Below are positions 3,769 through 44,563 of a stretch of DNA of 64,000 bases, in pieces. The stretch is from Rebecca billardiae RCC1528. Lineage: Eukaryota; Protista; Haptophyta. The translations under genes were made by a program, and so were the position numbers. The number at the start of each line of letters is the position of its first letter. Within the stretch, counting starts at the first letter, position 1. The notes beneath the pieces were generated by a model. That model was not told the origin of the DNA and searched no databases. It worked only from the letters and a program-made list of their open reading frames with translations. The stretch is from assembly GCA_965240325.2 (NCBI GenBank), contig OZ251229.1, positions 186,001-250,000 of the forward strand, in the 5' to 3' direction.

Positions 3769-6516
3769 ATGGCGCAGCAGGGGTACGCGGTGATGCAGCA
3801 CGACGTGCCCGCGCAGACGATCGTGTACCCGGCCGAGGCGCAGCACGGCGCCGTGAGCGCGGACAGGCACCCGATCATACAGGGGGGCGTGCCGCAGATC
3901 GTGATGATGCCGCAGGACCCGGACGACGGGTCGAACAAGAAGAACGCGTGGACGAAGGAGGAGGACGACAAGCTCTGCGAGCTCGTGCAGCACTTCGGCC
4001 CCAAGAAGTGGTCCACCATCGCCACGCAGCTCGGCACAGAGCGCGTGGGCAAGCAGGTGTGTGCGCGCGGCGCACGTGCGGCGCGCGCGCGGCGCCGGGC
4101 GGGCGAGCTGCGCGCGCGCGCCGTCCGCGCGCCGCGCCGCGCCGCGCCGCGCCACGTCGCGCCCGCCCGCCCCGCTCACCGCGCGCGCGCGCCGCGCGCC
4201 CCTGTGCCGCGCAGTGCCGCGAGCGCTGGCACAACCACCTGAGCCCGGCCGTGCGCAAGGACCACTGGACGGAGGAGGAGGACAAGCTGATCCTCGAGAT
4301 GGTGCAGAAGCTCGGGACCAAGTGGTCGCAGATCGTCAAGTACCTCCCCGGCCGCACGGACAACGCCATCAAAAACCGCTGGAACTCGGCCATGCGCAAG
4401 TCCCTGCGGCGGCAGCAGAAGACGCAGGGCGGCGGCACGCCGCCGCCGGCGACGCAGCCCGCGTCGGGCTCGCAGCCGGCGAGCAGCGACGCGCCCAAGG
4501 CGGAGGCCGCCGCGACGCCCGCGCCGCCGCCCGCGCCGCTCGTCTCGCCGGGCCACGCGCCGCCCGCGCTGCCGCTCGCGCAGCAGGTGGGCGCGGCCGC
4601 GCCGGCGCTCGTCGCCGCCTCGAGTGTTAGCCCGAGCTACGCGCAGCCGCAGCCGCAGCCGCAGCCGCAGCCGCAGCCGCAGCCGCAGCCGCAGCCGCAG
4701 CCGCAGCCGCAGGTGGCGGGCGCGGCGGCGGCGGGGCACGCGCACGGCGTGGCGCCGCACTGCCGCCCCGCGCCCGTCGGCGCGGGCCTCGGCCTGCAGC
4801 CCGTCCACTCCGCGCCGCTCGGCGTCAGCTCGCCCTCGGGCGCGGAGCACGCGGCCGTGCGCGCGCTCGGCCTGCTGTGCCCCAACGACGTCTCCGTGCA
4901 GCTGGCGATGGACATCGCGGTGAGTCCGGGGCGGGGGGGTCCGGGGCGGGCGGAGGGAGGGGCGGCGGGTGGGGGGGGGGGGGGGGGGGGGTGCTGGGCG
5001 CAGCCGCCGCGCGGCCGCGCGGCCGGCCGCGCCGCGCCGCCGCGCCGCCGTGCACACCGCGGTGCCGACCCGCGTGCGCACGCTGCACGCCCGCCCCTGC
5101 ACGCCCGCCCCACATCCGCGCGCGCACGCCCGCCGCAGACGTCGCACAACATCGCGGACGGGGACAAGCGGCAGCTGCTGCGCGAGCTCGTGCTCGGCCA
5201 GTCGGTCGCCGCGCCCGCCGCGGCGCTTGGCGTGGGCGGGCAGGGCGAGGACGGCGGCGGCGGCGGCCCGAGCGGGCGGCGGCGCGGTGGCGGGCGCGGG
5301 TGCGAGGACGGCTCGGACGGCGCGGGGGAGGCGGTGCGTGCGCGCGCGCCGCGCCGGCGGCGGCGGCGCGCGTGGGCACGGCGCGCGTCGCGGCGTGCGC
5401 GCGCGTGGGCTGACGGGCGGCCCGCGACCCTCCGCGCTCTCCGCGCAGGATGGCGGCGTGCCACCCCTTGCGCCGCAGCCGCCCGCGCGCGGCCGCGGCA
5501 GCAAGCGCGCCCGGAGCGCCGCGGCCGCTGCGGCCGGCGGCGGCGGCGCCTCGTCCATCAACGCGGCGGAGGCGCAGGCGCAGCTGCGGCACGCGCGCAC
5601 GGGCGGCGCGGCGCCGCCCTTCCACACCGTCAGCGCGCAGCCGATGCTCGCGCAGCACGGCGGCGCGGGCGGCGTGGTGTACGTCCAAGCGACGCCCGCG
5701 CCGGGCGGCGGCGGCGGCGCGGGCGCTGGCGGCGCGCAGCCGCAGTGCGTGCGAGGGGCGTGTGTGCACGCCGTGGCCTCGCACGCGCAGCCGGCGGCCG
5801 AGGGCGCCGCCGGGGGCGCGGGCGGCGGCGGAGGGAGCACCGGCGGCGGGTTCGACCGCAGCAGCCTCGAGCCACTCGCCATGGGCGGCGTCGGCTCGCC
5901 GCCCAGGGCGGAGCACAGGTGGGCGCCGTGCGCCCGGCGCGCATGCGCACGCGCGACTGTGGGCGGGGCGGCGAGCGCGCGCCGGCGCCCCGCCGCTCAC
6001 GCGCCGCCCGGCGCACGGCTGCGCGCGTGCGTGCGCTCGCGCGCGGTACAACAGGCAGGTGGCGAATCTGCGCAAGTCGCCGCGGCTGCGCACGGCTGCC
6101 TCGCCGCGCTCGATGGAGGTGCGCGGCGCGTCGCGCTGCGCGCCGGGCGCTCGGCACACGCAGCAGCGGCAGCGGGCTCACGCGCCGCGCCGCGCCCCGC
6201 GCCGCGCGCGCGCCGTGCGCAGGCCGCCGCCGCCATCTCGCTGCTCGGCGGCCCGGCGGCCGGGACGCTTGCGCCCGCAGCGGACGCGCCGGGCAGCGCG
6301 CCCGTCGGCGCCGACGGCGCAGCAGCCGGCGGCAGCAGCCGGCCGGCCGCGACCATAGCCGGCTCCCTGGGCCTGCAGCCGCGCGGCTCCAGCAGACTGG
6401 CCGAGCCGCCCGAGTCCAAGCGCGCCGGCAAGGGCGGGGCGAGCTCGCGGCCGCTGCACTTCGAGTCGAACGCGCCGAGCTCGACGGAGGCGGCGGGGGC
6501 GCTGGCCGCCTCGTGA
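3769..6516 (+). CDS. Two-repeat (R2R3-type) MYB transcription factor; predicted exons 3769-4056, 4215-4919, 5139-5333, 5449-5918, 6053-6118, 6223-6516
   Basis: KNAWTKEEDDKLCELVQHFGPKKWSTIA...RVGKQ|CRERWHNHLSPAVRKDHWTEEED...GTKWSQIVKYLPGRTDNAIKNRWN. GT..AG introns with CTCAC/CTGAC branch sites keep the frame. The 3' exons are less certain. Confidence 0.9.
4644..4712 (+). repeat. (CAGCCG)n microsatellite, ~11.5 units, encoding (QP)n in the MYB protein
   Basis: Perfect hexamer repeat read directly from the sequence. Confidence 0.95.
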
Positions 6517-9927: not shown

Positions 9928-11610
9928 GGGCGTTGCAGCGCGCGTCCTGCCGGTGTTGTGGCGAGGTCGCCGCGTCGCCGCGGAGCGTGTGAAGGCCCTG
10001 GCCGTGCGTCGCAACTCGCAGCGCGCGAGCGAGCAGCACGACTAGGCTTCAGACGCCTGTCGAGCACACCCCGTGGTCCCCGGCGTTCCGCGACCGGCTC
10101 GGCCCAGTGTAGTGGCCCACTCACAGTGGCCCAGTGTTTGCAGGCAGTGCGTTCCGGGGTGACTTAATCTTATAAAATTTAATATATTTTAATATATATA
10201 TTAAAATAAATAGATAGATAGCCTATACGGGTCGCTGATGAGTAGACAAGGCTGGTTATCTACTTCTAGGCTATCTAGCTTATAGCCGCGACATTATTGC
10301 CGCTCTGCTGTGATGACGAAGTCTGATTATGAATATGACTACTATATATGATGATTATGACGAATAAAGAATTACTGCGCGCACGCGGCGCACGGCGCCC
10401 ACACGGTGACGGTGCCGGTGGCCGGCATCAGGGGCGTCGGCTGCCGGCGGCACTGGTCGCACCCCCGCTCACGCCGCAGTGACCGGAGCGCACCACGGCG
10501 GCTCTCTCGCTCGCCGGGCACGGTCGGGGAGTAGCCGCGTCTGCTGCGCAGACCCGCCACGGCTCGCCCGGGCATCAAGTGGGCGGTCCGCTGTGTCGCC
10601 GCCGCGCGTGACGCACAGCGCCGCTCCACGCACGCAATAAATTCATTCAATCGTGGTGCGCATGCGCGTAGGTTACTCTGTGTCACTGGTCCACACCCAG
10701 CGTGTGAGCCCGTGCTTTGCCACTACGTATGCAGGCTGCCATTGCAGGCGGCACCTGACTGAGTCCTGACACGCTTTCGCGCAGGTGCCGCGCCGGGCAG
10801 TGCCAACCCCTGGCTTCGGACAGGCTCAGCTAGTGGGCAGCCTGGCTCGCTCAATCTCATGCTCCTGCCGCGCGGGGTGCCCAGCTTGCTGCGCTGGGTG
10901 TGTACTGGCGCGCTCGGACGGTACCTCATCTGCCTCACACGCCTTGGTCGGGAGGGCCCGGCCCGCGCCCCGCGGGCCGCGCGGCCACTGTCGTCGCATC
11001 GAGCTCGCCGCCAATAATCGGCTGCACTCGTTTTCAGCTGCTAGCGCGCGCATCACGCGCTACACGCAAGGCTGAACACGTGGCTGTAGGCGGGCATCAC
11101 TCGATCGCCATCAGCCCCGTCACGGACTACCTTCACGAATAGCCCTCGCTTCGGCGCGCCGAGGATAGAGCCGCCGTGCGGTAATGATTAGCGCGCGCGT
11201 AAAAAATGTTAACTGGAGGAACCCCCTTGACTGGAGGGCCATTCTAGATTCGTTTGCAGGCGCGCGCGGCGCGCGCGCCTGAAGTATGCGCGCGCCGCCC
11301 TATTAGGTGTGCCTCTTATATGAAATGGAGCGCAGTAGTGAGTCACTGATGTGTATACCCCCATACTGTACTGTAGACTCGTAAGAAGCGCCGCCGGTTT
11401 GCAGCGCGGTTAATACGCGAACCTTCCCGCCACGCTTTCCTTAATGGCGGCAGTATGATGGATGCTACGATCGATGCTTCTCTCCTTCGGAGATCAAATT
11501 ATAGTAGACGAGTCGTCGCGGCGGCATCGAGCTTTATTGGACCCGCGCGGGCGGTGCGCACGCACCATCGTCTGAACGAAGGCACCCGAAGAGAGGCCCG
11601 CGTGCCCACC

Positions 11611-14600
11611 ATGTCCAGCGTGACGACCGGCTTGCGGCACGCCATGGGTGTCGCGCTCGTGATAAGTCTGCTGGCGTCGGGCGCGGCTGGCATCACTTTT
11701 GAGTCCAGCACCGAGTACACGGAGTGCTTCGGCCACGGGTTTGCGTGCACAAGCATCGATGTGCGTGAGTCGGCGCTGTCGCGTGACCGCGACCGCGCCA
11801 AACGACCAATCGAACCTAAACCTTGGGCTTCCTTGGCTCATGGCGCGCGCGCCGGCGAGCGGCCGTGCCGCGGCAGGCGCGTGACGGCAATCGCATTGCA
11901 ATGAAGAGCGATGACGCCCTCGCCGGCACGGTCGCCTCGCCCACCACATGCGACTCACGACGCGCGCGTCGCACGTGCGCAGGTGAGCACGTCTGATTAC
12001 TCGGGCACGATCCCAACCGACATCGGTTCGCTAGCTGGCCTTACCAGAGTGTACGCGCACGGCGCGGCGCGCGCGGGGCCAGCCAGCCGACCAGCCAGCC
12101 AGCATGCAGCGGCGATTGTACGGGCACCCGCGCAAAACTGCACGTCCACTTTGCGACCACCCAACCGGAGGGAGGATCTGGCCGCAGCCGCCGAGGCTAG
12201 TAGCCTGAGCAGCGCGCGCGCCGTGCGCGTCTGTACGCAGTCGTGCGGTCGCCGGGCAGTAACCAGCTGAGGGAAACGGGGGCGTGCGTCCGCCACCACA
12301 GTCTCAGTTCACCACTCGCCGCGCAGGGATCTGACTGGCAACTCTCTCAATGGCACCCTTCCAAGTGAGATTGGGCTCTTGACGTCTCTGAATCAACTGT
12401 ATGCGCGGCCAGGCCGCCAGGGCCGGCCAGGGGCGGTGGTGCGACATCATCGCCATCGACGCGGGCTCACGGCGTGGTGGCGCACGCCCTGCCGAGCCTG
12501 ACAACCCACTCACGTGCCATGCGCGCGCGCGGCTACTCGCTGCTACTCGCTGCGCAGGGGTCTGCGGGCCAACTCGTTCTCGGGCACCCTTCCAACGGAG
12601 ATCGGCCTCATAACATCTATGGTGTTCATGTACGTACGGCAAGGGCCAGCTAGGGGTGGCTGCGCGGCATTGGCTCACCAGCCACGCGAGCGCCCAGCGT
12701 GGCGCGCACCCCGGCTCACGCGCCATCCGTTGCGCACCGCGCACGCTACTTGCTGCGCAGGTTTGTCTCGGACAACTCGTTCTCTGGCACCCTTCCAACT
12801 GAGATCTTTCTCATAGTTGGGATGATCGGCATGTACGTGCGGCCAGGGCCAGCCAGGGGCGGTGGCGCGACACATTCTCGCCATCGACGCGGGCGCATAG
12901 CGTGATGGGGCACGCCCTGCCGAGCCTGACTGCCCGCTGCTTGTGTGCAATGCGTTCTTTCGCGCACCACTCGCTGCGCAGGCAGCTGCAGACCAACTCG
13001 TTCTCGGGCACCCTTTCAACTGAGATCGGCCTCATGCCGTCTCTGAATCAACTGTATGCGCGGCCATGCCGCCAGGGTCGCCGGCCAGCAGTGGCGGTGG
13101 TGCGACATATGCTCACCAGCCATGCGCGCACAGCGTGGCGCGCACGTCCTGCCAAGCCTGACTGCCCGTCCGCGTGCAATGCGTTTGCAAACAAACCACT
13201 CGCGCTGCGCAGGCTTCTGGACACCAACTCGTTCTCGGGCACCCTTCCAACGGAGATTGGCCTCCTGACATCTATGGTCTCCATGTACGTTCGGCCAGGG
13301 CCAGCCCGGGGTGGCTACGCATCTTTCTCACCAGCCACGCGAGCGCGCACCGCGTGGCGCACTCCCTGCCGAGCCTGACCACCAGCTCGCGTGCAATGCG
13401 TGTGCACGCGACTCGCTGCACAGGGGTGCGTCCGACACCTCGTTCAATGGCACCCTTCCAACGGAGATCGGCTTCATGACGACTCTGCAGGTTTTGTACG
13501 CGCCTGCCGAGGGTGGTGGTGCTACATTCTAGCCAGCCACGCCTGTGCACAGCGCGACGGCGCAAGGCCTGCCGAGCCTGATGCCCGCCCGCTCGTGCGA
13601 ACTGCGCGCGCGCGCGCAACTCGCTGCGCAGCACCGCGAACGGCGTGAATACCGTCTCGTACTCGGGCACACTTCCAACTGAGATCGGCCTCTTGACTGC
13701 TCTGCGCCAATTGTACGCGCCGGCCAGGGCCGGTGGCGCGTGTGCGTGACATTCTCAGAAGCCAAACTGGTGGCGCACCGCTCTGTGAACAGCCCTGCTG
13801 AGTCTGACCGCCCGCTCGTGTGCTATTTGTGTTTGTGTGCGTTACTCGCTGCGCAGCGCTTTGAATTCCGCCTCGTACTCGGGCACCCTTCCAACGGAGA
13901 TCGGCCTCATGACTGCTATGGTGTACATGTACGTACTGCCAGCAGGGCCAGCCCGGGCTGGGCCATGGCCCAGGGGTGGCCGCTCGACCTTTTCGCCAGC
14001 CACGCAGGCTAGCCCACTGGTGCTTGCCCTGCCGAGCCTGACCGCCCTCTCGTGTGCTGTGCGCTTGTGCTCGCCACTCGCTGAGCAGGTTAGTGTCCTC
14101 GAACTCATTCTCTGGCACCCTCCCAACTGAGATCGGACTCATGACGGCTCTATCCTACATGTACGCGCTGCCGGGGGGGGGGGGGGGGGGTGTAGTGGGC
14201 ATTTTCGCCATCGCCCCGAGCGCAAACAGCACTGCCCACACCCTGCCAAGCCTGACCCCCTGCTCGCATGCAATGCGTTCACACGCCACTCCCTGCGCAG
14301 TAATGCATTCGAAACCAAGATCAACGGCACCCTTCCAACTGAGATCGGCCTCAATACGGCTCTGTTTTCTATGTACGCGCGGCCGGGGGCGGTGGCGTCG
14401 TGGCATTTTCTCGCCAGCAGCCATGCGAGTGCACTGCTGCGCACAGCGCGGTGGTGCGCTGCCTGCCAAGCCTGATCGCCCGCTCATGCGTGCAACTCGC
14501 TACTGCGCAGCAATCTGTATACCGCCTCGTACTATGGCACCCTTCCAACGGAGATCGGCCTCTTGACGACTCTGTACGAAATGTACGCGCCTGCCATGGC

Positions 14601-16208
14601 CAGTGGCGGTGCGTGACATTCTCAGCAGCCAGGCGGGTGGCGCACAGCGTGGCGCACGCCCTGCCGAGCAGACTGCCCACTCTGTGCTATGCGTTTGCGC
14701 ACGCTACTCGCTGCGCAGCAATTTGAAGACCAACTCGTTCTCTGGCACCCTTCCAACTGAGGTTGGCCTCATGACGGCGCTGCAGCTCATGTGAGTGATG
14801 CTCTGCGGGCCACCTGGGGTGGTGGTGCGACGTACTTGAGCCAGCCACGCGAGCGTCACACAGCGCGGCGCATGCCCTGCCGAGCCTGACCGCCCGCTCG
14901 TGGGCTCCGCGTTCGCGCACACTTCTCGCTGCGCAGAGATTGGAACACCAACTCGTTCTCGGGCACCCTTCCAACAGAGATAGGCCTCCTGACATCTACA
15001 ATTGCCATGTACGTAAGGCCAGGGCGTGCCAACCAAAGGGGTGGCTGGCTGGCTGCGCGCGACATTCTCACGAGCCACTCGAGCACACAGCGCGGCGGCA
15101 CACACCCTGCCGAGCCTGACCGTCCGCTCGCGTGCAATGCACACCACTCTCTGCGCAGGCAGCTGCAGACCAACTCGTTCTTGGGCACCCTTCCAACGGA
15201 GATCGGCCTCCTGACAGCTCTGGCAGCCATGTACGTACGGCCAGGAGTGGTGGCGCTCGCGCATTGCGCCGGTCCTCGCGTGCCCCGTGCTGTCCGACGC
15301 AGCGCCACGCTTGCTATGCCCGCCGCTGACGCCGCTGCGTGTACGGCGGTGCCCTGTCCCCCTCACTGCGCATCGGTGCCATCGACACTCGCAGGCTTCT
15401 TGACGCCACGCAGGTGTGGCACCCTGGCGGCGCGCACGGCTATTCTTTCGTGTTCCCGGCGACACTCGCATTGGCACCGCCTCCCTCGCCGCCGCCCTCG
15501 CCGCCGCCCTCGCCCCCACCATCGCCATCATCTATGCCACCGCCCTCGCCGCCGCCCTCACCGCCACCATCGCCACCATCTACGCCACCGCCCTCGCCGC
15601 CGCCCTCACCGCCGCCCTTGCCGCAGTCGCTGACGCCTCCACAGAGTCCGCCGCCGCCGCCACCGTCACCGCCGCCGCCTCCACCGTCACCGCCGCCGCC
15701 TCAAAAAGTGTGCAGGGCCTTGTGCTTCTACTCGGTGCGCACTGCGCACCTGGCGGCGCGGGCGCGAACGCCCAGGCGCCGTCCAGCACACCGTGAGCGT
15801 GCGATGGCGCTCACTCCGGCGCGCTGCGCGCCACCGCAGCTCCGCTCGCACTGACAAGCCCTGCTGCCGGCCACCGCGCGCTGCCGGCCCCGCGCGCTGC
15901 GTCTGCAGATCGTCGCATCCGCAGCAAGGTTCCTGATCAAGTCCAGCAGCATGCAGGGCCGTGCCCTCGCCTCGCTGTCAGAAAGCGACCTCCAAGACGG
16001 CCCTGAGCTCTCGGCTGGCACTCAGTCGTCGTCTTGGGTTAGCGCCCCAGCCGCATTGTCTGCCGAGCAGTCCATCAAGGCACTCCCAGCTGCGATGACC
16101 ATTGCTGCTACTGCCGGGTTCGCGCTTGTGGTGCTGTCGGCGGCGGCCTCGGCGCTGGTCGTGACACGCGCCTCTCGCCGTCGGTGTGGGAGCAGCAGCG
16201 TGGCGTAG
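11611..16208 (+). CDS. LRR receptor-like surface protein: signal peptide, ~15 plant-type 24-aa LRRs, SP3-5 proline-rich stalk, C-terminal TM. Exons 11611-11760, 11983-12050, 12327-12398, 12558-12629, 12761-12832, 12982-13053, 13213-13284, 13424-13495, 13632-13712, 13857-13928, 14089-14160, 14301-14372, 14511-14582, 14719-14790, 14937-15008, 15159-15230, 15395-15707, 15909-16208
   Basis: Each exon is bounded by (T)GCGCAG-like acceptors and GTAYG/GTGAG donors and encodes xLxxNSFSGTLPTEIGLLTxLxx. The spliced frame is open throughout. N-terminal hydrophobic MGVALVISLLASGAAG, then PPPSPPPS repeats, then TM AATAGFALVVLSAAASALVV followed by RASRRR. Confidence 0.88.
12301..15300 (+). repeat. Tandem array of ~200-230-bp exon+intron units
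   Basis: Recurrent GGCACCCTTCCAACxGAGATCGGCCTC in the exons and GCCCTGCCGAGCCTGAC...ACTCGCTGCGCAG in the introns. Confidence 0.95.
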
Positions 16209-16612
16209 CTGCTTTGGCACGTCGTCATCGACGGCGCCTTCGCCAGTCGGCCGACGCCGAGCGCTGCTCGCTGACATTGGCAGGCGCCTTCAAGCTGTGA
16301 TCGATGATACAATAAGTTTGACGCGCCGCCTTCAAGTTCATCTGCTTCGTCCTCCGAGCACAACCCGCCCACAGCCACAGGGCCACATCCGCGCACAACC
16401 CGCCCACAGAGCCACTGCCCAACATGGCTCGCGTGTGCATCTTCAACAGTCTCGTGCAGTACCGTACCGCGTACGACATGACCATCATGATATAAGCATG
16501 CGCCAACTGAGTCTCGGATCTATTTCTTGCCTGCTTGCGCTGGCAATAATCATATCGTCCGGCCCGTTCATGGCCTTGCCCGCGGGCGGGCAGTGAACTG
16601 CATGCGCACGAC

Positions 16613-16665
16613 TACAATTTACTAAGAATAAGAGACGCGTCACACAGCTCAGTCAGCAGGCGAGA
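16613..16665 (+). mobile_element. Degenerate solo copy of the Tc1/mariner-like TIR
   Basis: TACAATTTACTAAGAATAAGAGACGCGTCACACAGCTCAGTCAGCAGGCGAGA compared with the TIR at 34652: one substitution plus short insertions. Confidence 0.75.
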
Positions 16666-16679
16666 CATGGTCCGTCGAA

Positions 16680-16875
16680 TCTGCATATATATATTAATAT
16701 ATATATAATACTAATATATTATACGGTGGCCGTATATATATAGCATATCATAGAATCAGTCGTTAATAATAATATAGTCTATATATATATATATATATAC
16801 TATAGCTTCCCGTTACCAAATAATTATATATTATTAATATATATTATTAATCGCCGGTAATTTTTGATAACTGAA
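16680..16875. repeat. AT-rich island with (TA)n tracts
   Basis: Abrupt switch to very AT-rich sequence, with a TATATATA run at about 16779-16799. Confidence 0.85.
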
Positions 16876-17384
16876 GACGATGATGACGACGAACGACTTT
16901 AAGTCTAAGACAAGAGTAAGACAGCTGCCGCCGCAGACTAATTCTATGTATATGATGATTTACGAGGGCGCAGCTCTCCTCAGATTCGTCTGTCGAAGTA
17001 CTGACTCCGGAGTCGTCGGAGCGCGTTGGCCGCGGGTGCTAAGGGAGTCGTCGTCGCCGATGCTGATCACACAGAGGTAGTAGGGGCCAGAGGGATGCCG
17101 CTGTATTTATTGCAGTCGTCGCCGGCCTTGGTCTAGTACTCATCGAATATATCGACTCGTTTTATTCATTATTGGCCCCCTGGCAGTGGCCTGCCCATCA
17201 GCAGGCAGTCACGGCGCCACGACCGATCGCGCGAGCTGTGCCGTGCGAGCAAGACACGACAGGTAGTTATTACGACTGTCACGGTACGCGGTAGAGTAGC
17301 GTTTGGAGACCGAGTCGTGCCAGACTTTACAGTAGACTTGCCGCGCTGCTGCTGCGGCGAGTGCCGCGAGTGCTCCGGTGGCGG

Positions 17385-18116
17385 GACGCGCACGGGGCAC
17401 GGCGCTGCGGGCGTGGATGTGCCCACAGAGCCGCCGCGTGCGGACGGGCTGCGGCGGGAGAGCACCAGGCACCCTCCTGCACCGCGCGTCGTGCGCGACG
17501 CCTCTTTCGCCTCGGCTCAGGGCAGCGCGCACGCGCGCGCACCGCCTCAAGGCCAGCCCGTTGCCGCGCCGCAGCCGACCGCGCGCGCGGCGCCGTGCGC
17601 GGCGTGGTCGGGAAGGAACGGGCGCTGCTGCCGGGCGAGATGGTGATAGCAGATGCGCAGGTCATCCGATGAACATTCATGCACGAGTAGCTCGCGCGCC
17701 CGTCTGGCACTGTTATGTGGCTCTGTGATCGTCCCGACAGGCGACAAAGGTCTCCCCATGCACACCATTCGTGAGAAGTCGAAAGAGGCATGCAAACGGG
17801 TCGACGACAAGCTCGTCAAGGCGTCGTGGGGCGGCATTGCCTGCGCATCTGCTATCACCATCTCGCTCGGCAGCAGCGCCCGTTCCTTCACGACCACGCC
17901 GCGCACGGCGCCGCGCGCGCGGTCGGCTGCGGCGCGGCAACGGGCTGGCCTTGAGGCGGTGCGCGCGCGTGCGCGCTGCCCTGAGCCGAGGCGAAAGAGG
18001 CATGGCGCAAGACGCACGGCGCAGGAGGGCGCCTGGTGCTCTCCCGCCGCAGCCCGTCCGCACGCGCCGGCTCCGCGGGCACATCCGCGCCCGCAGCGCC
18101 GTGCCCCGTGCGCGTC
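17385..18116. repeat. Long inverted repeat: arms 17385-17661 and 17840-18116 (277 bp each), 178-bp spacer
   Basis: The right arm is the reverse complement of the left arm with scattered substitutions, e.g. ATGGTGATAGCAGATGCGCAGG / CCTGCGCATCTGCTATCACCAT. Confidence 0.92.
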
Positions 18117-18242
18117 GGAGCATCGCCGGCCGCCGCCCGCCCCGCGGCTGGGGGCCGGCCCGGGGCGGTGGCCCGAAAACTTTCAACTTGGGCCGGACTG
18201 GTTCCCTTCCGGCTTGCCCGCGGGCCGCGCTCGTGCATCAGA

Positions 18243-24852: not shown

Positions 24853-25611
24853 TCACGTCGAGAGCTTGAGGTCACCGCCCTGCATCTTGGTCGCCACCTC
24901 CTTGTCCACCAGCGCCTTCCGCCTCTGGTTGTACACGTCTGAGCCCGGCCCGGCGAGCAGGCCGTCCCCGCCGAGCAGCTGCTCGTCCACCTCGACGCGG
25001 TCGAGTGCCGTGTGCTCGAGCAGCGGCACAGGCAGCGCGCGCAGCTCGGGGTTGCCCTTCACCTTGAGCCAGCGCAGGCGCGTGCACCCGCCCATGGCGT
25101 CTGGCAGTAGCGCGAGCGTGTTCGAGCTCAGGTCGAGCTCGACGAGCGCCGTGAGCCCGCCCACCTCGTCAGGAAGGCCAGAGAGCCTGTTGCGCGCTGC
25201 GCTCAGCAGCGTGAGCGAGCCGAGCGCGCCGATGGCGGGGGGCAGCTCGGTGAGCGCGTTGCCGTCTAGGTGCAATTTCTTCAGCCGCGTGCAGCCGCCG
25301 ATCTCGGCCGGGAGCGCCGTGAGCGCGTTATGCGTCACGTCCAGCATCTCGAGCCGCGCGAGCTGGCCGACGACAGCGTCGAGCGCGCTCAGCCGGTTGT
25401 GTGCGAGCGTGAGCATCGTGAGGCTCCTGCCGAGCTCGCCCATGCTCGGTCCGATTTGCGAGACGGCGTTGTGCGAAAGGTCGAGCGTCCGCAGGGTGCC
25501 CAGCGCGAGCACGCGGTCGGGGATTTTGGTGAGCGCCGGCACCTGCTTTTGCAGCACCAGCACGCCCGTCTTCTCGGCGCGCTCGATACGTGTGCTCGTG
25601 TTGTTGCCCAT
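24853..25611 (-). CDS. LRRC57: Leucine-rich repeat protein 57-like (intronless)
   Basis: N-terminus MGNNTSTRIERAEKTGVLVL resembles LRRC57 (MGN...A.KTGV..L), followed by about 7 23-aa LRRs. Confidence 0.75.
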   Translation of the reverse strand: MGNNTSTRIERAEKTGVLVLQKQVPALTKIPDRVLALGTLRTLDLSHNAVSQIGPSMGELGRSLTMLTLAHNRLSALDAVVGQLARLEMLDVTHNALTALPAEIGGCTRLKKLHLDGNALTELPPAIGALGSLTLLSAARNRLSGLPDEVGGLTALVELDLSSNTLALLPDAMGGCTRLRWLKVKGNPELRALPVPLLEHTALDRVEVDEQLLGGDGLLAGPGSDVYNQRRKALVDKEVATKMQGGDLKLST

Positions 25612-26004
25612 CACGCCGTCCGTCGACGGAAGAGAGGTCGAGTAGCACGTCCCCATGTATGGCGCGATGCAACGCCCGCGATGAGAACGTCTCGCAGAGG
25701 ACAGCCGAGCTGCCGGCGCTGCAGGCGGCGGCGGCGGCCTTCCACTGCGGCGGCCACTGATCCGGTTGCGCGGCCGCCGGCCGTGATCTCGATCCGGACG
25801 CACTGGAGACCTGCTAATACGGCTTCCTCTGCCATAAGCCACTTTACCCGCCTGGCATTCAGTGTTGGTAGGGCGGCCGCGGACGACGGCGGGTACGTTC
25901 AACGTCAAGGAACTCTCGTCCCCTGCCGTTTGAGTCAAATCGGCCTCGCGCCTGCGCGACTGCGCGAGGGAGGACTGCTGGGGCAGGGCTCTCAAAACGC
26001 GCCG

Positions 26005-29000
26005 ATGAGCGGCAGCCACTCGGCGCTCGCGCGGCTCGAGGACTACTTGCAGAGCCACGACGGCGCGTCAGCGCAGCACGCGCCCGCACGCCAACCAGCG
26101 CCCCCGGCGGCTCGAGCCGCTCCCGTCGTCCAGCGACCGGGCGGCCGGTCGGCGTGTGCAGGCGCGGCTCATGAGCGCTCGGCGCACCATGCGGCGCACG
26201 GCGGCGGCGGCGGCCGGGATGCACGCGAGACGGCACCGCATTCGGGTGCACGCCGTGTGCTCGGTGACTACAATGGCCTCGCGCGCCGCGGCGCGCGCAC
26301 TGGCGAGGGCGCCTTCGCTGCCGCCAATGTGCCGCCGAGCGTGAGCGGAGGTGAGGGCGTGCAGGGTGCCTTCTCGCTCTTGCCGTCTGCCAAGCTGGAT
26401 CGCCTGCTGCAGAGCGCCGCGGAGCCGCCTCCTGGCAGCATTGGCACGTACACGCTCGGCGCAGCCGACTCGACGCCGCTCGCCTCGCAGCTCGACGCGT
26501 GCGTGAGTGCATGCGGCCCCAGCACGCCAGCGGCCGCAGCGGGCGCGCACAACGTCGAGGCATGCGCCCCGCACGAGGAGGGCTGGGGCAGCGCCCCGGC
26601 CGCGCGCGCGGCTGCGCCTGACGTCTTCGCCGATGCCGACCCGCCGAGCATCCGCTGGATCGACGACGGTCAGATCTGGCTCGAGCCGCCCGCGGACGCG
26701 CCGGCAGCGCCACGAGCCGATGCGCATGCGCGGCGCGGCGCGAACGGCCACGCGGCGCAGGTCGCCACCGTGGCGCTCGCCGCGGCGGCGATGCGCGAGC
26801 AGGCGTACGCGTCGTATGATATGTCCGGACTCGCGCCGACCCAGCCCGCACAGCCCGCGGCGGGGATGTGGGCGCCGCCGTACGAGGGCGCGCGCCACGG
26901 CAGCGGCGGCGCGCGTGGCGCGCAGGAGGGCCGGTCAGCCGAGCAGAGCGTGCACGCTGCAGACGGCGCTGGGTTTCCGCGGCCGCGCACGTTCTTCGTC
27001 AGGGACGCGCCGCCGCTGCCCCAGCACCCCGAGGCCCTCGGCGCCGCGCCGTCCGGCGCGCCCACGCCCGCGCTCGCCGCGCGCGCGCCGCAGCTGTCGG
27101 GCGAGTCGTGCAGCGCCCTCGCGTCCGCGCTCGCGAGCCGGACGGTGCACGAGGCGGTGCAGGACATGTACCGCGCGATGGGCGCGGGCTGCTCGGCGCA
27201 CGGCGGCGCGTCGGCGCGCGCGGCGCCGCCCCCGCCCTCCGCGCCGCTCGTGCCCGCCGTCCGCCCGCTGCACATCGCCGCCTCCGGCTTCCCGGGCGCG
27301 CGCGCGCGCGAGGCGCCCGTGGCTCGCGCGGAGGCCGAGCCGCGCGCGGCGCACGCGCACGGCGTGAGCGCGGCGGGCGCAGCCTCGCGCTCGGCGAGCG
27401 CGCGGCCGGCGTCCGCGGCCGCGTCGGCTGCGCCGCTCGCCTCGCCGCGCGCGCGCGCCAGCAACGCGCACGCGGACGCGCGCACCCGGCAGTGGTACCT
27501 GCTGTTCCACTCGAGCGCCAGCGTCTCTTCGCGCGCGGAGCGGGTGCCGTGGGCGCGCTGGCCGGCGGTGCAGAGCTGGGTGCACGCGCGGCGCAAGAAG
27601 CGCGTGCTCCGCCGCCGGCCGCTCGTCGCGAACGGCCGCGGCCGCGGCTTCGTGAGCGCGCTCACGCCGATCGAGGACGACGACGCCGATGCCACGGAGG
27701 CGCATGCGCCGCTCGCAGGCGCGTGCGCACAGCAGGCGCATGCGGCCGCGCCCGTCGCTGAGGATGGCGCTGAGGAGGAGGGCGCTGCCGCTGCCGACCT
27801 CGCGCCCCTCGCGCACACCCGCGCCGACGGTGCGGTCCCGCCACACGCGAGTGCGGAGGCGGGCGCAGTAGGCGGCGAGACGGAGGCGGCGGCCGCTCGG
27901 GCCGCCGACGCCGAGCCCGTGCTCACGCGCTCATCGGCCGAGCGCGCGCCGCCTGCCGCTCCGCCGAGCGCTGCGCCCGCCATGGCCGCGGCCGGGCCGC
28001 CAGGCGCGCACTCGACCGCGCCGGCGATGCCGACGCGCGCCGACGACGGCCTGCTGCGGATGCTCGCCGCGGCGCCACCGCCGTCCCCAGACGCGCCCAC
28101 CGCCGTGCCCACCGGCTTCCCTGCGATCGAGCCTGCCAGCCTCATCGAGGCTGCGCGCTCGGACGCGCCAGCAGCCGCCGCCATGCCGCCGCCGCCGGCG
28201 GCGACTGCATCGCTCGAAGCTGCGCCGGCCGTGGTCGCGCGCGACGCGCGGGCGCAGCCGGAGTCGCTGCCGGCGCTGGGGCGCGCGCTTGCCCAGGCTG
28301 CGGGCCCTGCCAGCACCAGCCCGGGTCCCAGCGCCAGCGTTGCCGAGACACCCGCCGCCGCCGCTGGCCACGCGCCGGCCGGCACAACGCCATCGCCTGC
28401 GGACACGCCCCCCGAGCACGGCGGCGGCGATGCGCGGGCACGCCGGGCGGAGGCGTTCGGCCGGTGGCTCACGCTCGGCGCCGCGATGCGCCGCCGCCGC
28501 GCCGTGCTCGCGGCCGCCCGCGCGGTGCTGCGCGACACCGCCCCGCGTGGCCGCACTGGGGCCGTCGTGCGGCGCGCCTGGCGCCAGCTCGGCGCGGCGC
28601 TCCGGCGCGCGCGCCTCCGCGCGGCGGCGCCTGCGCCCGCGGCGGCGCGGCCCAAGCAGCGCAGCGCCGCCGCCGTCGCACGCCTCCTGCCGCAGGCGGA
28701 CGGGCAGACGAGCGTGGTGTCGCGCGCGCTCGCCTCCGCAGCGGGGAGCGCGGGCGAGAGCGCGCACCCCGCGCGCGCCACAGCCGGCGCGCGCGCCGCG
28801 GGGACACCCTTGGAGCGGCCCGCGCCGCAGCGCACTCCGCAGCGCGCGCAGCGCGCGCAGCGCGCGCAGCCGCTCATCCCGGCGCCAAGTGCGGCGGCGG
28901 ATGCGCGCGCGCTCATCGCGCCGCGCGTGAGCCGCGCCGTGTCCGCCGGCGAGCGGCGCGCGCGGCCGGCGGTGCAGGCGGGCCTGCGCGCGGGCGCGCG

Positions 29001-30375
29001 GCGCGTGCGCATCGCGCCGCCATCGGGCGCGGCCGACCTCGGCTCAGGCAGCGCCTCCCCAGCCGGGCGCGCGCCGCCGCTGCTCGAGAGTCCTGCGGAG
29101 GAGTCTGGGCTGCTCCTGTCGCCGCGCCCGGCGTCGAGCCCGGCGTCGTCGACGGCGGCGGCGCGCATGCTGCCGCTGTGGGGCGAGGCTGCTGCGCGCG
29201 CGGACGGCGCCGCGCACGCGCACGCAAACGAGGGCGGCGCGGCGAGCAGCGCCGTGCCCGCCAAGCTGCCGCTGCTGCACGCGCGCGTGCCCGCGCCCGC
29301 GCCGGGCGTGGGCGCGCGCGCCCGTGCCCGCCAGGCCAAGCTGGAGCTTGCGCTCGTTGCGGCCGAGCACAGGCAGCTCGCGCGCGGCGGCGCGCTGGGC
29401 AGGGCGTGCCGCGGCGCGCGCGCCGACACAGCGTGCGGCAACGTCGTCGCCGCCGTCGCTGCCGCTGCCGCCGCCATGTCCTCGGTGCCGCCGAGTGTGG
29501 CCGCTGCCGCCGTTGCGGCTGAGCCCTTGCTTGTGCTCGGCCGGAGGCCTGTCGCCGCCGCGGCCGGCAGCGCGTGGCTGCAACCGCAGCCGCCGCCCTC
29601 TGCAGGCGCGCACGCGCCCACGCCGCCGCCCGGCGGGCCGTCTGGCGCAGAGGAGGGCGCCGCCGCCGCGCGCCGCCACCGGCGCCACCGGCGGCTCAGA
29701 GTGCCGAGCGGCGAGCTGGCTGATGCGCTGCAAGCGCAAGCGGACGGCGGCGCGGCAGCCGACGAGCCGGCGGCGCAGGAGCTGGCGGAGCGCACCGCGC
29801 GCGCGCAAGGCGCGCATCGCCCGGCGGCGCGCCCGCAGGCGACACCGCCGCGCCTTGACGACGCACTGCCGCCGCGCCCTCCTGGCCCCGCGCCGTCGTC
29901 GCCGGCGCGCCACTCGCGCAGCAGCGCGCCAAGCTCGCCGCCCACGCCGCCGCGCCGGGCGAGTCGCGCGCCGCTGCAGCCCGTGCACCACACAAACGCC
30001 AGCGCAGCGCAGCCCGAGCCAAGCCGGCCTCGCGCCGCGCCCAGTGGAACCAAGGGGGGCGAGCTGCGGGCGGCCCGCGCGGCCGATGCGCGTCGAAGCG
30101 CCGATGCCGGCGTGGCCGCAGCCAGCGCAGATGAGGCTGCCGCACACGGCGGCGGCGCGCCCGGTGCCGGCTCCGCCGAGGACGCGTCCTCCGTGGACGA
30201 GCTCAAGGCGCAGCTTGGCCGGCTGCAGCGCTTCCTCGCACATCCGCCACCCGCCCTGGCGGAGTTTGCGGCGGGCGCGGCGGCGGTGGCGAAGGCATCT
30301 TGCGGATCTGCGGCAACGGACGCGCGACCACATGAGCGGCGGCAGGGTCCTCGTCAGCAGCTGCAGGCGTCGTGA
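26005..30375 (+). CDS. Large Ala/Pro-rich low-complexity protein of unknown function
   Basis: A 4.4-kb open frame starting MSGSHSALARLEDYLQ, with a short C-terminal coiled coil (VDELKAQLGRLQRFL). No domain recognised. Confidence 0.6.
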   Translation: MSGSHSALARLEDYLQSHDGASAQHAPARQPAPPAARAAPVVQRPGGRSACAGAAHERSAHHAAHGGGGGRDARETAPHSGARRVLGDYNGLARRGARTGEGAFAAANVPPSVSGGEGVQGAFSLLPSAKLDRLLQSAAEPPPGSIGTYTLGAADSTPLASQLDACVSACGPSTPAAAAGAHNVEACAPHEEGWGSAPAARAAAPDVFADADPPSIRWIDDGQIWLEPPADAPAAPRADAHARRGANGHAAQVATVALAAAAMREQAYASYDMSGLAPTQPAQPAAGMWAPPYEGARHGSGGARGAQEGRSAEQSVHAADGAGFPRPRTFFVRDAPPLPQHPEALGAAPSGAPTPALAARAPQLSGESCSALASALASRTVHEAVQDMYRAMGAGCSAHGGASARAAPPPPSAPLVPAVRPLHIAASGFPGARAREAPVARAEAEPRAAHAHGVSAAGAASRSASARPASAAASAAPLASPRARASNAHADARTRQWYLLFHSSASVSSRAERVPWARWPAVQSWVHARRKKRVLRRRPLVANGRGRGFVSALTPIEDDDADATEAHAPLAGACAQQAHAAAPVAEDGAEEEGAAAADLAPLAHTRADGAVPPHASAEAGAVGGETEAAAARAADAEPVLTRSSAERAPPAAPPSAAPAMAAAGPPGAHSTAPAMPTRADDGLLRMLAAAPPPSPDAPTAVPTGFPAIEPASLIEAARSDAPAAAAMPPPPAATASLEAAPAVVARDARAQPESLPALGRALAQAAGPASTSPGPSASVAETPAAAAGHAPAGTTPSPADTPPEHGGGDARARRAEAFGRWLTLGAAMRRRRAVLAAARAVLRDTAPRGRTGAVVRRAWRQLGAALRRARLRAAAPAPAAARPKQRSAAAVARLLPQADGQTSVVSRALASAAGSAGESAHPARATAGARAAGTPLERPAPQRTPQRAQRAQRAQPLIPAPSAAADARALIAPRVSRAVSAGERRARPAVQAGLRAGARRVRIAPPSGAADLGSGSASPAGRAPPLLESPAEESGLLLSPRPASSPASSTAAARMLPLWGEAAARADGAAHAHANEGGAASSAVPAKLPLLHARVPAPAPGVGARARARQAKLELALVAAEHRQLARGGALGRACRGARADTACGNVVAAVAAAAAAMSSVPPSVAAAAVAAEPLLVLGRRPVAAAAGSAWLQPQPPPSAGAHAPTPPPGGPSGAEEGAAAARRHRRHRRLRVPSGELADALQAQADGGAAADEPAAQELAERTARAQGAHRPAARPQATPPRLDDALPPRPPGPAPSSPARHSRSSAPSSPPTPPRRASRAPLQPVHHTNASAAQPEPSRPRAAPSGTKGGELRAARAADARRSADAGVAAASADEAAAHGGGAPGAGSAEDASSVDELKAQLGRLQRFLAHPPPALAEFAAGAAAVAKASCGSAATDARPHERRQGPRQQLQAS

Positions 30376-39235: not shown

Positions 39236-39739
39236 CCGGGCGAAGAGCGCCGTCATCGCTGGGGCCGCGCCAGCGGCGCCATCCACGCCGCCACGGGACC
39301 GGGTGCATGATTTTACTATGCCGTAACTATGCGCTGGCCGCGGGACCTCAGCTGCATGCAGACTCAGTGCGTGCATGCTCACTAAACACTATACGACGAC
39401 GATAAGATCCGCCAGCAATAATATAGCAGCATGCGCCGATGCGGCGCGGTGAGTCATCACTGCTACTTATTATATTCCTTGCCGCCAATTACTTATATTT
39501 TTATTCATTTTTGCGACCTCGGACCTTAGTACAAGTCCGAGGCCGAGGCCGGGCCGGCGACAATACGTTCTAAAGTGGTCACATCGTCATCAAGCTGTGC
39601 GCTGGCGACGCGCTGCTGCCTGCCATTGAGCAGCGTGCGCAGTGCCGCTGCCACTACCAATCGATGAGCCCGTCCGTGCCGCTGCCCACTCAGTCTCAGG
39701 GGCGCTTCTCACAGACAGTCACAGTCGTCTCACGCGTCG

Positions 39740-40822: not shown

Positions 40823-41574
40823 GCTAGACTGCCGGCTGCCGAGCGCGCGCGCACGCGCGAGGTCGTTGATGACGACGTGCGGGCGTCAAGTCGCCACGCG
40901 AGCGGTCGGATTCAGATGCACAAGATCGATTCCGGTTCCACGGTGGCGGCAGCCCTGCGCCACCCAAAAAAAGATGAGCGTCCACCTGTCCCGCACATCT
41001 AGTGTCTCGAGATTTGGTGTGTCAGAGAAATGAGAATGCTCGTGAGACTTCTCTTATTGCATTTTTTTCTCTAGAACTACTACCGTAGTCTAGCAGCCGT
41101 CTAGCGGCCGAAGGTCGCGGCCTCCGCTCGATAGACGGCTCGCCCGGCCGGGCAATCTGACGATGCAGATGGAATGATGTCAACTACATACATCTATACG
41201 CCTATGATGATAGCACCTCGGATGCACAGCTCAACAGTCTGGAGTGCCGAATGGGCAGCAGCGTCGCGACGCCAGCGCGAGAGCGTGCGCGCGCTGGGAC
41301 GGCTGCCGCCGAGCGAGACGGGCCGCGGGCCTACCACGGCGGCTGCGCTCTCGCCGTCGAGAGGCCGAGGGCTCCCGCGCAGGGCGCGGGGGGATGCGTG
41401 TGCGAGACAAGGACACAGAGGACGGGGTCGTGGCGGAAGCTGAAGAGGTGCGGAAGCGCGCCCCGAGTCGTCGGGCCAGCGCATGGCGGCGGCCGCACGG
41501 GCCAGCCGAGCGCCGGCCTCAGAGTCGCACCCGGCGTGCGGCGTGCGGCGGCGGGCGCGGGCGTCGTGCGGCGC

Positions 41575-42664: not shown

Positions 42665-43007
42665 GGTGGTCAAGCTCTGGAAGGTGGCGGTCGTGAGCGG
42701 AGCGGGCCACGCGGAGGGACGGCCACGTCTTTGGTGCTGCGAAGCATGTGTGCTCGCCACCGCGCGGAAAGGATGGCGTGCGGATGCGCGGCTTCGTGAA
42801 GCAACTTCAGACTTGAGACTGCGCCTTGCGGGGCTGCGCGTTCCGCCGCACCCGGACGGGCGTCACGGCGACGCCCGGACTCTCACGCCCACCGCAGCAA
42901 AAGCTTGCCGGACGTGGGACGGCAGCCGGGGGCGGCGCTGTGGGCGGCGGCCTCAGACCATCGCCGAGGTCACTCGCCGGGCCGGGCCGCGCGCGCGCGC
43001 GGGCGCG

Positions 43008-44525: not shown

Positions 44526-44563
<38 letters not shown>

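Follow-up and report, generated by a model that had tools for sequence, protein, structure and literature searches.

LRR exons of 72 nt and phase 2 occur in the SERK family. Rice LRR-kinases have them too, in that their extracellular LRRs lie on 72-nt phase-2 exons with the intron placed in the first Leu of xxLxLxx (PMC3050792). In the brown alga Ectocarpus, the so-called type II LRR exons (xLxxNxLxxxxxGxxxxxxxLxxL) are found in LRR-kinases and in eight other loci, and positive selection has been reported at exposed positions equivalent to those of the haptophyte gene described here (PMC3341825). Shuffling has been recognized in Ectocarpus by the presence of inverted or inactivated LRR cassettes in introns (PMC3341825). 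More distant parallels are the 90-bp LRR exon arrays of Tetrahymena, which has thousands of such genes (PMC6564038), and the vertebrate glycoprotein-hormone (gonadotropin) receptors, which also have phase-2 LRR exons (cited in PMC11378527).

The gene analysed here lies on the plus strand of a 64-kb window (by which we mean the whole stretch of DNA studied, 64,000 nucleotides) and comprises 18 exons between positions 11611 and 16208 (Table 1). Exon coordinates were taken from the AG/GT boundaries flanking a repeated motif, and the resulting spliced ORF is uninterrupted over 615 aa. All 17 introns are GT-AG, and their splice sites are strong, near-identical and canonical throughout, with donors mostly GTACG and acceptors CTGCGCAG. 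Since 11 of the 17 introns contain in-frame stops, the frame is open only once the transcript is spliced. The TM exon (exon 18) would be joined to the rest of the gene via the predicted donor of intron 17.

Table 1. Parts of the LRR gene, in positions of the 64-kb window.
Feature	Position	Strand	Description
Exon 1	11611..11760	+	ATG, signal peptide, Cys39/Cys46 pair; phase 0 end, donor GTGCGT
First LRR exon, degenerate	11983..12050	+	68 nt, phase 0 to 2, GT end; weak profile match, E 0.065
LRR exon	12327..12398	+	72 nt, phase 2-2, CT end
LRR exon	12558..12629	+	72 nt, phase 2-2, AT end
LRR exon	12761..12832	+	72 nt, phase 2-2, AT end
LRR exon	12982..13053	+	72 nt, phase 2-2, CT end
LRR exon	13213..13284	+	72 nt, phase 2-2, AT end
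LRR exon	13424..13495	+	72 nt, phase 2-2, TT end
LRR exon	13632..13712	+	81 nt (27-residue repeat), phase 2-2, TT end
LRR exon	13857..13928	+	72 nt, phase 2-2, AT end
LRR exon	14089..14160	+	72 nt, phase 2-2, AT end
LRR exon	14301..14372	+	72 nt, phase 2-2, AT end
LRR exon	14511..14582	+	72 nt, phase 2-2, AT end
LRR exon	14719..14790	+	72 nt, phase 2-2, AT end; sole LRR exon with donor GTGAGT
LRR exon	14937..15008	+	72 nt, phase 2-2, AT end
Last LRR exon	15159..15230	+	72 nt, phase 2-2, AT end
Exon 17	15395..15707	+	short spacer, then extensin-like (S/T)PPP stalk; phase 0 end, predicted donor GTGTGC
Exon 18	15909..16208	+	Ser-rich juxtamembrane segment, TM helix (about residues 577-600), 14-residue tail; stop TAG 16206-16208
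Conserved intronic element CCTGCCGAGCCTGAC	within 12488..15120	+	array introns

The interval 11983-15230 holds 15 LRR exons, 14 of which are consecutive and of phase 2-2 (13 of 72 nt and one of 81 nt). The initial annotation had described 14 internal exons of exactly this kind, each encoding one LRR, and the exon coordinates agree with it; its count fits the interval that it gave for them only if the first exon there, of 68 nt and phase 0 to 2, is left aside. The intron interrupts the first Leu codon of LxL in phase 2, and the exons end in GT (one), CT (two), AT (ten) or TT (two), so that the junction codon always has the form NT/N. The earlier claim that any such join yields a hydrophobic residue and never a stop was borne out when all pairwise joins were computed: each of the 225 gives M, I, L, V or F. 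Because 14 exons are of phase 2-2 with NT/N junctions, omission of any of them preserves both frame and register. The repeat core GGCACCCTTCCAACNGAGATCGGCCTC is present in 14 copies at ≤3 mismatches, all on the plus strand and all inside the gene, where shuffled sequences lead one to expect none.

The consensus of 13 exons, xLxxNSFSGTLPTEIGLxTxLxx plus a junction residue L/M/I, places the array in the plant-specific (PS) class of 24-residue LRRs, defined by tandem repeats of LxxLxLxxNxLxGxIPxxLGxLxx. When the read-through of array exons 5-6 was used as a query against 1.84 billion representatives, it returned LRR proteins, with 968 matches at E<=1e-3; named among them are a protein of Cymbomonas and, from Seminavis, an ‘LRR receptor-like serine threonine-protein kinase’, and the word-indexed ones bear PF00560, PF13855 and PF23598. 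The matches in the PDB are almost all plant LRR ectodomains, led by FLS2, MIK2, HAESA and RGFR and followed by PEPR1, SERK and LRX. Pfam gave no match to single exons or two-exon read-throughs, query pieces that are too short.

Read from its N terminus, the protein consists of a signal peptide (judged from hydropathy only, with a peak at residues ~11-30), a Cys-pair cap (Cys39/Cys46 in CFGHGFAC) similar to that at the N terminus of plant LRR proteins, 15 LRRs, an SPPP-rich, extensin-like stalk of ~75 residues (61% Pro, 20% Ser), one TM helix (the top KD-19 hydropathy windows fall at about residues 574-602) and a basic 14-residue tail, TRASRRRCGSSSVA. Neither the last exons nor the ORFs downstream yielded a Pfam kinase, and the gene contains no domain besides the LRRs, ROC-COR included. 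A signal peptide, a Pro-rich stalk, a TM and the lack of a kinase had all been noted before, and hydropathy, composition and the Pfam scan agree with that description. These predictions, an N-terminal signal peptide with a Cys-pair cap followed by a single C-terminal TM with a short tail and without a kinase, are those of an RLP, and they support an extracellular receptor-like protein without kinase as the product.

A protein with such a stalk might instead have a structural or adhesive role of the LRR-extensin type, tethering the cell covering or mediating cell-cell or gamete adhesion rather than recognizing pathogens or self. The ~75 extensin-like residues of (S/T)PPP, the 14-residue tail devoid of a signalling domain and the appearance of plant LRX (LRR-extensin) among the PDB matches, weak as these are (E 0.2-0.4), are in keeping with this idea. 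We nevertheless consider it unlikely, as LRX proteins have a Cys-rich hinge and no TM, whereas here the TM is present and the hinge absent, as receptor ectodomains head the PDB matches, and as the hypervariable residues of the concave face suit specific ligand binding.

The haptophyte gene resembles plant LRR-kinase and LRR-RLP genes in its extracellular, plant-specific 24-residue LRRs, each on one 72-nt phase-2 exon, and in the order of signal peptide, Cys-pair cap, LRRs and TM. It differs from plant LRR-kinase genes in having no kinase and in the extensin-like stalk between LRRs and TM, and from the many plant genes that have lost most LRR introns in keeping one exon per repeat. Similarity to plant LRR genes is at the level of the repeats (35-45%), orthology with them is not detectable, and the database searches retrieved neither an ortholog nor a paralog. 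With the Ectocarpus type II exons it shares size (72 nt, 24 aa), an identical register and the absence of intronic or inverted cassettes, so that there is no tangible mark of ongoing shuffling; unlike the type II genes described in detail, which are from a brown alga and encode kinase domains, it has no kinase. Brown-algal LRR-ROCO genes, with one LRR per 72-nt phase-2 exon of type I, are modular and skippable in the same way (PMC3341825, PMC11378527), but their exon boundaries are offset (GxxPxxLxxxxxLxxLxLxxNxLx), their proteins are cytoplasmic with ROC-COR domains, and at their loci some intronic cassettes are inverted or inactivated and splice variants are documented, whereas no such cassettes occur in the haptophyte window. 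Tetrahymena and the glycoprotein-hormone receptors share tandem LRR exons of equal length, phase-2 introns and a split junction codon, and differ in exon length, LRR class and register. Against the thousands of array genes of Tetrahymena, one array is seen in our 64-kb window.

A further array was found in Cymbomonas tetramitiformis (KAK3281766.1; LGRX02003711.1, locus L001), where nine 72-nt exons of phase 2-2 meet at CT/N junctions. It has an identical register (x/xLxxNxLTGTVPTELGLLSSAxx/CT, slashes marking the exon boundaries), the same kind of core motif and tandem exon+intron units. However, these units are ~990 bp long and young (introns 94% and exons 86% identical), whereas those of the haptophyte are ~217 bp and old (65% and 71%). 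That the Cymbomonas exons are less alike than the introns means that they diverge faster. This array is a better candidate for an actively diversifying receptor than the haptophyte locus.

Sequence signatures of three mechanisms known from other systems were looked for and not seen: the dynamic shuffling of Ectocarpus ROCO/type I exons (offset register, no ROC-COR, no stray cassettes, best unit identity 77%), Dscam-like splicing (no docking site complementary to the intron motif above chance, and no sign of a conserved fold when the units are aligned) and VLR-like somatic cassette assembly (the gene is complete and spliceable, and the 64 kb contain no flanking cassettes). The initial annotation knew of the Ectocarpus arrays and omitted the extracellular precedents, namely rice LRR-kinases, Ectocarpus type II and Cymbomonas; since extracellular 72-nt phase-2 genes had been published, the extracellular location is no novelty. 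The layout is real, yet receptors of plants, green algae and brown algae are already known to have it.

Introns 2-14, those of the LRR array, align with one another (mean identity 65%, against 52% when shuffled), and their homology indicates that, as the array grew, an exon+intron unit of roughly 217 bp was duplicated in tandem. In this respect the modular-cassette idea of the initial annotation was correct. Exons are 71% identical on average; pairwise values range over 56-85% for exons and 53-79% for introns, and the units are roughly equidistant, with a star-like divergence and no distance-dependent pattern or higher-order periodicity. As no unit pair exceeds 77% identity, the duplications are old. 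Paralogous arrays and orphan cassettes, to which the initial annotation had looked for a check of its proposal, were sought in the window with a DNA profile (nhmmer) and a protein profile (hmmsearch), and only the 15 coding exons were recovered, all on the plus strand; neither in introns nor elsewhere, on either strand, did the 64 kb contain an orphan, inverted or inactivated cassette.

These results bear on whether exons are still being shuffled in the germline by unequal crossing-over or gene conversion, such that their number and order vary among strains and paralogs. Misaligned recombination has substrates in the homologous introns and in the invariant core of the exons, the array was clearly built in this way in the past, and the high intron identity of the comparable Cymbomonas array speaks for recent duplications there. 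Such shuffling nonetheless seems quite unlikely here, given the low identity and star-like divergence of the units, the lack of inactivated, inverted or intronic cassettes in the window, and, as weak evidence, exact-core DNA scans of a metagenome collection, itself unlikely to include the host, in which no related arrays were found.

Variation among the repeats is concentrated in codons 1, 3, 4, 22 and 23, the x positions of LxxLxLxxN (pN 0.69, pS 0.49), whose residues sit at predicted solvent-exposed beta-strand positions, while a pN of 0.05 in the repeat core indicates purifying selection. Synonymous sites of the core are invariant as well, on codons that are rare in the neighbours (CCA 14/15 vs 5.7%, CTT 15/59 vs 1.9%). 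A plain reading of the locus as an ordinary gene leaves these frozen rare codons unexplained; they point to a constraint at the nucleotide level, perhaps on splicing. GC3 is 0.69 in the LRR exons and 0.86-0.97 in neighbouring genes. The gene's exons are also lower in GC than its own introns. The depressed GC3, and the lack of any identical or near-identical protein in the databases searched, might suggest a pseudogene or decaying tandem repeat that merely mimics exon periodicity. We give this next to no credence, because frame, splice sites and LRR consensus are kept in all 15 repeats, the 18 spliced exons contain no stop, the core is under purifying selection, and in-frame stops in the introns leave the frame open only after splicing.

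Allowing ≤2 mismatches, the element CCTGCCGAGCCTGAC recurs in 11 of the 13 array introns; it precedes the acceptor by 39-56 nt and is likely to be the branch-point region (CTGAC). It could be speculated that the symmetric cassettes are used combinatorially, regulated skipping and inclusion generating many receptor variants as in brown-algal ROCO genes or Dscam. Skips would be in frame and in register across the 14 symmetric exons, for brown-algal ROCO genes with 72-bp phase-2 LRR exons as many as nine splice variants are reported (PMC11378527), the introns have been kept although the genome is otherwise of an intron-poor type (PMC8379373), and the invariant synonymous sites of the core could act as splicing signals. 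However, the splice sites are strong throughout, and none is weak or deviant in a way that would mark a regulated exon; complements of the intron motif are not above chance (one minus-strand match at 3 mismatches, against ~6 expected); folding of the alignment reveals no RNA structure that is conserved (-10.7 kcal/mol; the covariation term is unfavourable); and skippability in frame is a by-product of symmetric repeat exons, common to constitutively spliced plant LRR-kinase genes (PMC3050792). We therefore regard this as decidedly improbable, and more doubtful still is the specific form in which the cassettes are really in use and a splicing code, made up of the exons' invariant core and the conserved motif of the introns, allows regulated in-frame LRR skipping or inclusion. 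If that were true, a unicellular alga would gain a combinatorial repertoire of surface receptors from a single locus.

The window has a GC content of about 70%; in Diacronema lutheri it is 73%, and 45% of the genes there are single-exon (PMC8379373). A PdxS ORF in the window is 85% identical to that of Diacronema lutheri and 81% to that of Pavlovales sp. CCMP2436. The retention of 17 introns is unusual in an intron-poor lineage, and the introns could be useful.

On balance, we think it fairly probable that the locus is an ordinary, intact and probably constitutively spliced gene of a Pavlovales haptophyte, encoding a type-I membrane LRR receptor-like protein without kinase. Constitutive splicing is suggested by the uniform splice sites, and the topology, ligand binding and need for a co-receptor are likewise inferred. 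After removal of the signal peptide, the 15 plant-type 24-residue LRRs would fold as a curved solenoid, whose hypervariable residues on the concave beta-sheet may bind a ligand. The Pro-rich stalk, rigid and probably glycosylated, would space the solenoid from the membrane, where the TM helix and basic tail would serve as anchor; with these 14 residues as the sole cytoplasmic part, signalling would need a partner protein. The array itself was built by unequal crossing-over that duplicated the ~217-bp units in tandem, and because the first Leu codon of LxL is cut after base 2, the units are symmetric and their duplication is in frame. The duplications are ancient, and the array is stable at present by appearance. 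On this reading, the one-repeat-per-exon layout is an ancestral feature conserved in plant-type extracellular LRR genes and not a device specific to this locus. The active shuffling or combinatorial-splicing system envisaged in the initial annotation finds no support in the sequence, given old units, uniform sites and the lack of stray cassettes, docking and RNA structure.

In summary, the locus alone is no proof of a diversity-generating immune mechanism, and it is a clean example of how tandem duplication of an exon together with its intron enlarges a domain. The freezing of rare codons and the AT-richer exons could shed light on exon definition in GC-rich genomes where exons are short. If the plain reading is true, the 72-nt phase-2 design of one LRR per exon, documented in land plants and brown algae and here also in a prasinophyte (Cymbomonas), extends to haptophytes, and the haptophyte case supports the view that this design is ancient, or has been repeatedly favoured, for plant-type extracellular LRRs.

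The gene with one LRR per exon is probably a stable, constitutively spliced gene for an LRR receptor-like protein, whose array (the 14 phase 2-2 LRR exons and their introns) would have arisen by ancient tandem duplication of exon plus intron, with a conserved phase-2 design; this is one of five readings that we weighed, not all of which are mutually exclusive. We read 10.5-17 kb with the repeated motif GGCAC.CTTCCAA as an anchor, which gave unambiguous AG...GT exon edges. When spliced, the 18 exons form a single open frame of 615 codons, and because in-frame stops are present in 11 introns, the frame is open only after splicing; that the gene is a pseudogene is highly improbable. The LRR exons end in GT, CT, AT or TT, and every possible join (225/225) yields M, I, L, V or F. 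These boundaries and joins confirm the layout of interchangeable cassettes with hydrophobic junctions proposed in the initial annotation. The 14 phase 2-2 exons counted there stand, but the first exon of the span it delimited is a shorter one that passes from phase 0 to phase 2. With up to 3 mismatches allowed, 14 copies of the 27-nt repeat core were counted, against none in shuffles, all of them in this gene and on the + strand.

Features of the LRR gene and its surroundings in the window
Feature	Position	Strand	Remarks
Exon 1	11611-11760	+	
First LRR exon, degenerate	11983-12050	+	68 nt, phase 0 to 2
14 LRR exons, phase 2-2	12327-15230	+	13 of 72 nt, 1 of 81 nt
Repeat core GGCACCCTTCCAAC	exon cores in 12327-15230, e.g. 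12352-12378	+	synonymous sites invariant across 13 diverged repeats
Intronic motif CCTGCCGAGCCTGAC	within 12488-15120, e.g. 12488-12502, 14876-14890		11 copies
Introns with CCTGCCGAGCCTGAC absent or degenerate	12630-12760; 14583-14718		
Run of about 17 G	14176-14192		within array intron 14161-14300
Stalk exon	15395-15707	+	
Last exon	15909-16208	+	
AT-rich (TA)n-like low-complexity island	16670-16870		directly downstream of LRR gene 3' end
Stretches of 81-83% GC	4000-6000; 28000-30000; 44000-48000		very long open frames, both strands
Second, unrelated LRR gene	24856-26067	-	intronless, 404 aa, GC3 0.83
Long open frame	25270-30372	+	1701 aa, no Pfam match
Carotenoid cleavage dioxygenase (RPE65), Ldh_2 dehydrogenase, PdxS	37307-42396		
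PdxS ORF	41578-42396	-	
Open frame	42381-48017	+	RCC1, filamin-like, EDR1/CTR1-peptidase-like domains

By hydropathy, the 615-aa product has a hydrophobic core near its N terminus (residues ~11-30) and a single helix towards its C terminus (residues ~577-600), after which comes TRASRRRCGSSSVA. Cys39 and Cys46 (CFGHGFAC) stand ahead of the repeats, as in a plant LRR N-cap, and the repeat consensus, xLxxNSFSGTLPTEIGLxTxLxx plus a junction residue, identifies the repeat as the 24-residue plant-specific LRR. Residues 439 to ~515 form a stalk of (S/T)PPP repeats (61% Pro, 20% Ser). Neither the gene nor the next downstream ORFs contain a kinase or other domain, which bears out the absence of a kinase noted at the outset. 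An adhesive or structural role for this protein, rather than a receptor role, is possible but doubtful.

Combinatorial splicing of the LRR cassettes is in our view quite unlikely, since the splice sites are uniform, no docking or selector complement was found and no RNA fold is conserved. All 17 introns are GT-AG, and donors read GTAYG in 15 of them (the remaining two GTGCG and GTGAG); acceptors read CTGNNCAG in 14, of which 12 are exactly CTGCGCAG. The intronic motif CCTGCCGAGCCTGAC, whose conservation far exceeds the intron background, is nearly invariant and lies 39-56 nt upstream of the array acceptors; it is probably the branch-point region. No complement to it was found above chance, the one minus-strand match at 3 mismatches comparing with about 6 expected, and a Dscam-like docking site was therefore rejected. 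A conserved RNA structure was likewise rejected, as RNAalifold on 12 units (one exon plus one intron each) gave -10.7 kcal/mol with an unfavourable covariation term. Thus, across splice sites, motif complement and unit fold, nothing resembles docking or selector elements of the Dscam type.

Compared pairwise, the 13 array introns (131-160 nt) are on average 65% identical; shuffled controls give 52 +/- 2.5%. Because the introns are mutually homologous and share CCTGCCGAGCCTGAC, what was duplicated was an exon together with its intron, a unit of about 217 bp. The units have diverged far, in a star-like pattern: identity is 56-85% between exons and 53-79% between introns, the most similar whole units (3 and 6) reach 77%, and distance inside the array has no bearing on identity. 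Co-duplication of exons with their neighbouring introns was rejected, as their similarities correlated weakly in Mantel tests (r 0.26 and 0.21; p 0.10 and 0.15). A higher-order repeat structure was rejected for want of periodicity. Ongoing germline exon shuffling, in which cassettes would still be exchanged, is unlikely given that the units are so diverged, even at best, and that 64 kb yielded no intronic, inverted or inactivated cassettes, the evidence for ‘dynamic shuffling’ at Ectocarpus ROCO loci (PMC3341825). DNA and protein profiles of the exons, run over the window on both strands, recovered the 15 coding exons only, so that the search for orphan cassettes came out negative within these 64 kb. 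The initial annotation, which had proposed an exon-shuffling or combinatorial-splicing recognition system, is therefore upheld in its symmetric cassettes and missing kinase, but neither stray cassettes nor Dscam-type elements were found alongside them in the 64 kb.

Variation among the repeats is concentrated in codons 1, 3, 4, 22 and 23 of each LRR exon, which correspond to the x residues of LxxLxLxxN and so to the predicted concave beta-sheet. These exposed codons have a pN of 0.69 and a pS of 0.49, and the core codons GTLPTEIGL (9-17) a pN of 0.05 and a pS of 0.21, rough values because sites are near saturation and paralogous repeats, not alleles, are compared. Such a pattern of variable exposed and fixed core positions is typical of ligand-binding LRR domains and is uninformative about splicing. 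GC content is 54% in the LRR exons and 70% in their introns, and the GC3 of these exons is 0.69, below the 0.81-0.97 of the window's other confident ORFs. Codon choice differs from that of neighbouring genes: 14 of the 15 repeats use CCA for the Pro in GTLP (CCA makes up 5.7% of Pro codons in the neighbours), and CTT accounts for 15 of 59 Leu codons (1.9% in the neighbours). Over 13 repeats the codons GGC-ACC-CTT-CCA show little or no change in their third bases, and in the adjoining Thr codon the third base varies freely (ACG 6, ACT 5, ACA 1). A free third position flanked by frozen ones is better explained by nucleotide constraint at particular sites than by gene conversion, and the frozen synonymous sites of the core suggest constraint at the nucleotide level. 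The constraint could stem from an exonic splicing enhancer that serves short exons, from targeting by a small RNA, or from programmed slow codons.

Database searches returned no close relative. An exhaustive HMMER search with the stop-free read-through of array exon 5, intron 5 and exon 6 matched 968 LRR proteins in a representative set of 1.84 billion, among them Seminavis robusta LRR receptor-like proteins, a Cymbomonas protein and bacterial LRR proteins; as a search for orthologs or paralogs it gave generic LRR proteins only (bacteria, diatoms, Cymbomonas), none close. In the LRR region the highest local identities were 35-52%, a level that reflects repeat similarity. Queried with the exon 14-15 region, a word-indexed search found distant LRR fragments only, two metagenome DNA scans (the 27-nt core; two cores at array spacing) found no match, and Pfam gave no meaningful match to single exons, two-exon read-throughs, exon 1, the stalk or the last exon. 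Matches in the PDB, obtained with a 100-aa read-through, were almost all plant LRR ectodomains, with FLS2, MIK2, RGFR and HAESA at the top and HSL1, PEPR1, ERL, GSO1, HPCA1, SERK and LRX below; the 23-column exon profile had no significant match there.

The window is about 70% GC, as is the genome in which the AT-rich island lies; Diacronema lutheri has 73% GC and 45% single-exon genes (PMC8379373). The second LRR gene has strong Pfam matches to LRR_8, LRR_14 and LRR_4 and does not match the cassette profile. PdxS is 85% identical to that of D. lutheri, 81% to Pavlovales sp. CCMP2436 and 70-76% to other haptophytes; with no match at 100% and no shared gene order around PdxS, the window most likely belongs to a pavlovophycean haptophyte other than D. 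lutheri. The best matches of the RPE65-family neighbour (only 54% identity) are unnamed marine-eukaryote, dinoflagellate and diatom sequences. The PdxS neighbourhood of D. lutheri has no genes in common with the window; as the RPE65 and Ldh_2 neighbours are absent there, local synteny is not conserved, and PdxS synteny was abandoned as a route to a Diacronema ortholog.

Precedents for the design are found in several lineages. Brown-algal ROCO exons, the parallel drawn in the initial annotation, are 72 bp, phase 2 and alternatively spliced (PMC11378527); the extracellular-type precedents in rice LRR-kinases, Ectocarpus type II and Cymbomonas had been missed. Rice LRR-kinases have 72-nt exons with one repeat each (PMC3050792), gonadotropin receptors have phase-2 LRR exons (PMC11378527), and Tetrahymena has arrays of 90-bp phase-2 LRR exons (PMC6564038). 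Of the two LRR exon types in Ectocarpus, type I (ROCO) is offset in register from our exons, whereas type II (xLxxNxLxxxxxGxxxxxxxLxxL), which occurs in LRR-kinases and eight other loci without signs of shuffling, shares their register (PMC3341825). In Cymbomonas tetramitiformis, KAK3281766.1 (409 aa over 12.2 kb) has at 10179-18207 of its locus (LGRX02003711.1) nine tandem 72-nt exons, phase 2-2, flanked by gcag and gtaagt, with CT/N junctions and exactly the register seen here; the public model appears to run into intronic sequence in places. Its introns (~920 nt) are 94% and its exons 86% identical, and the array is young, with exons diverging faster than introns. The phase-2 72-nt design is thus widespread in extracellular plant-type LRR genes, and its occurrence in a receptor-like protein of a haptophyte adds a further case rather than a new kind.
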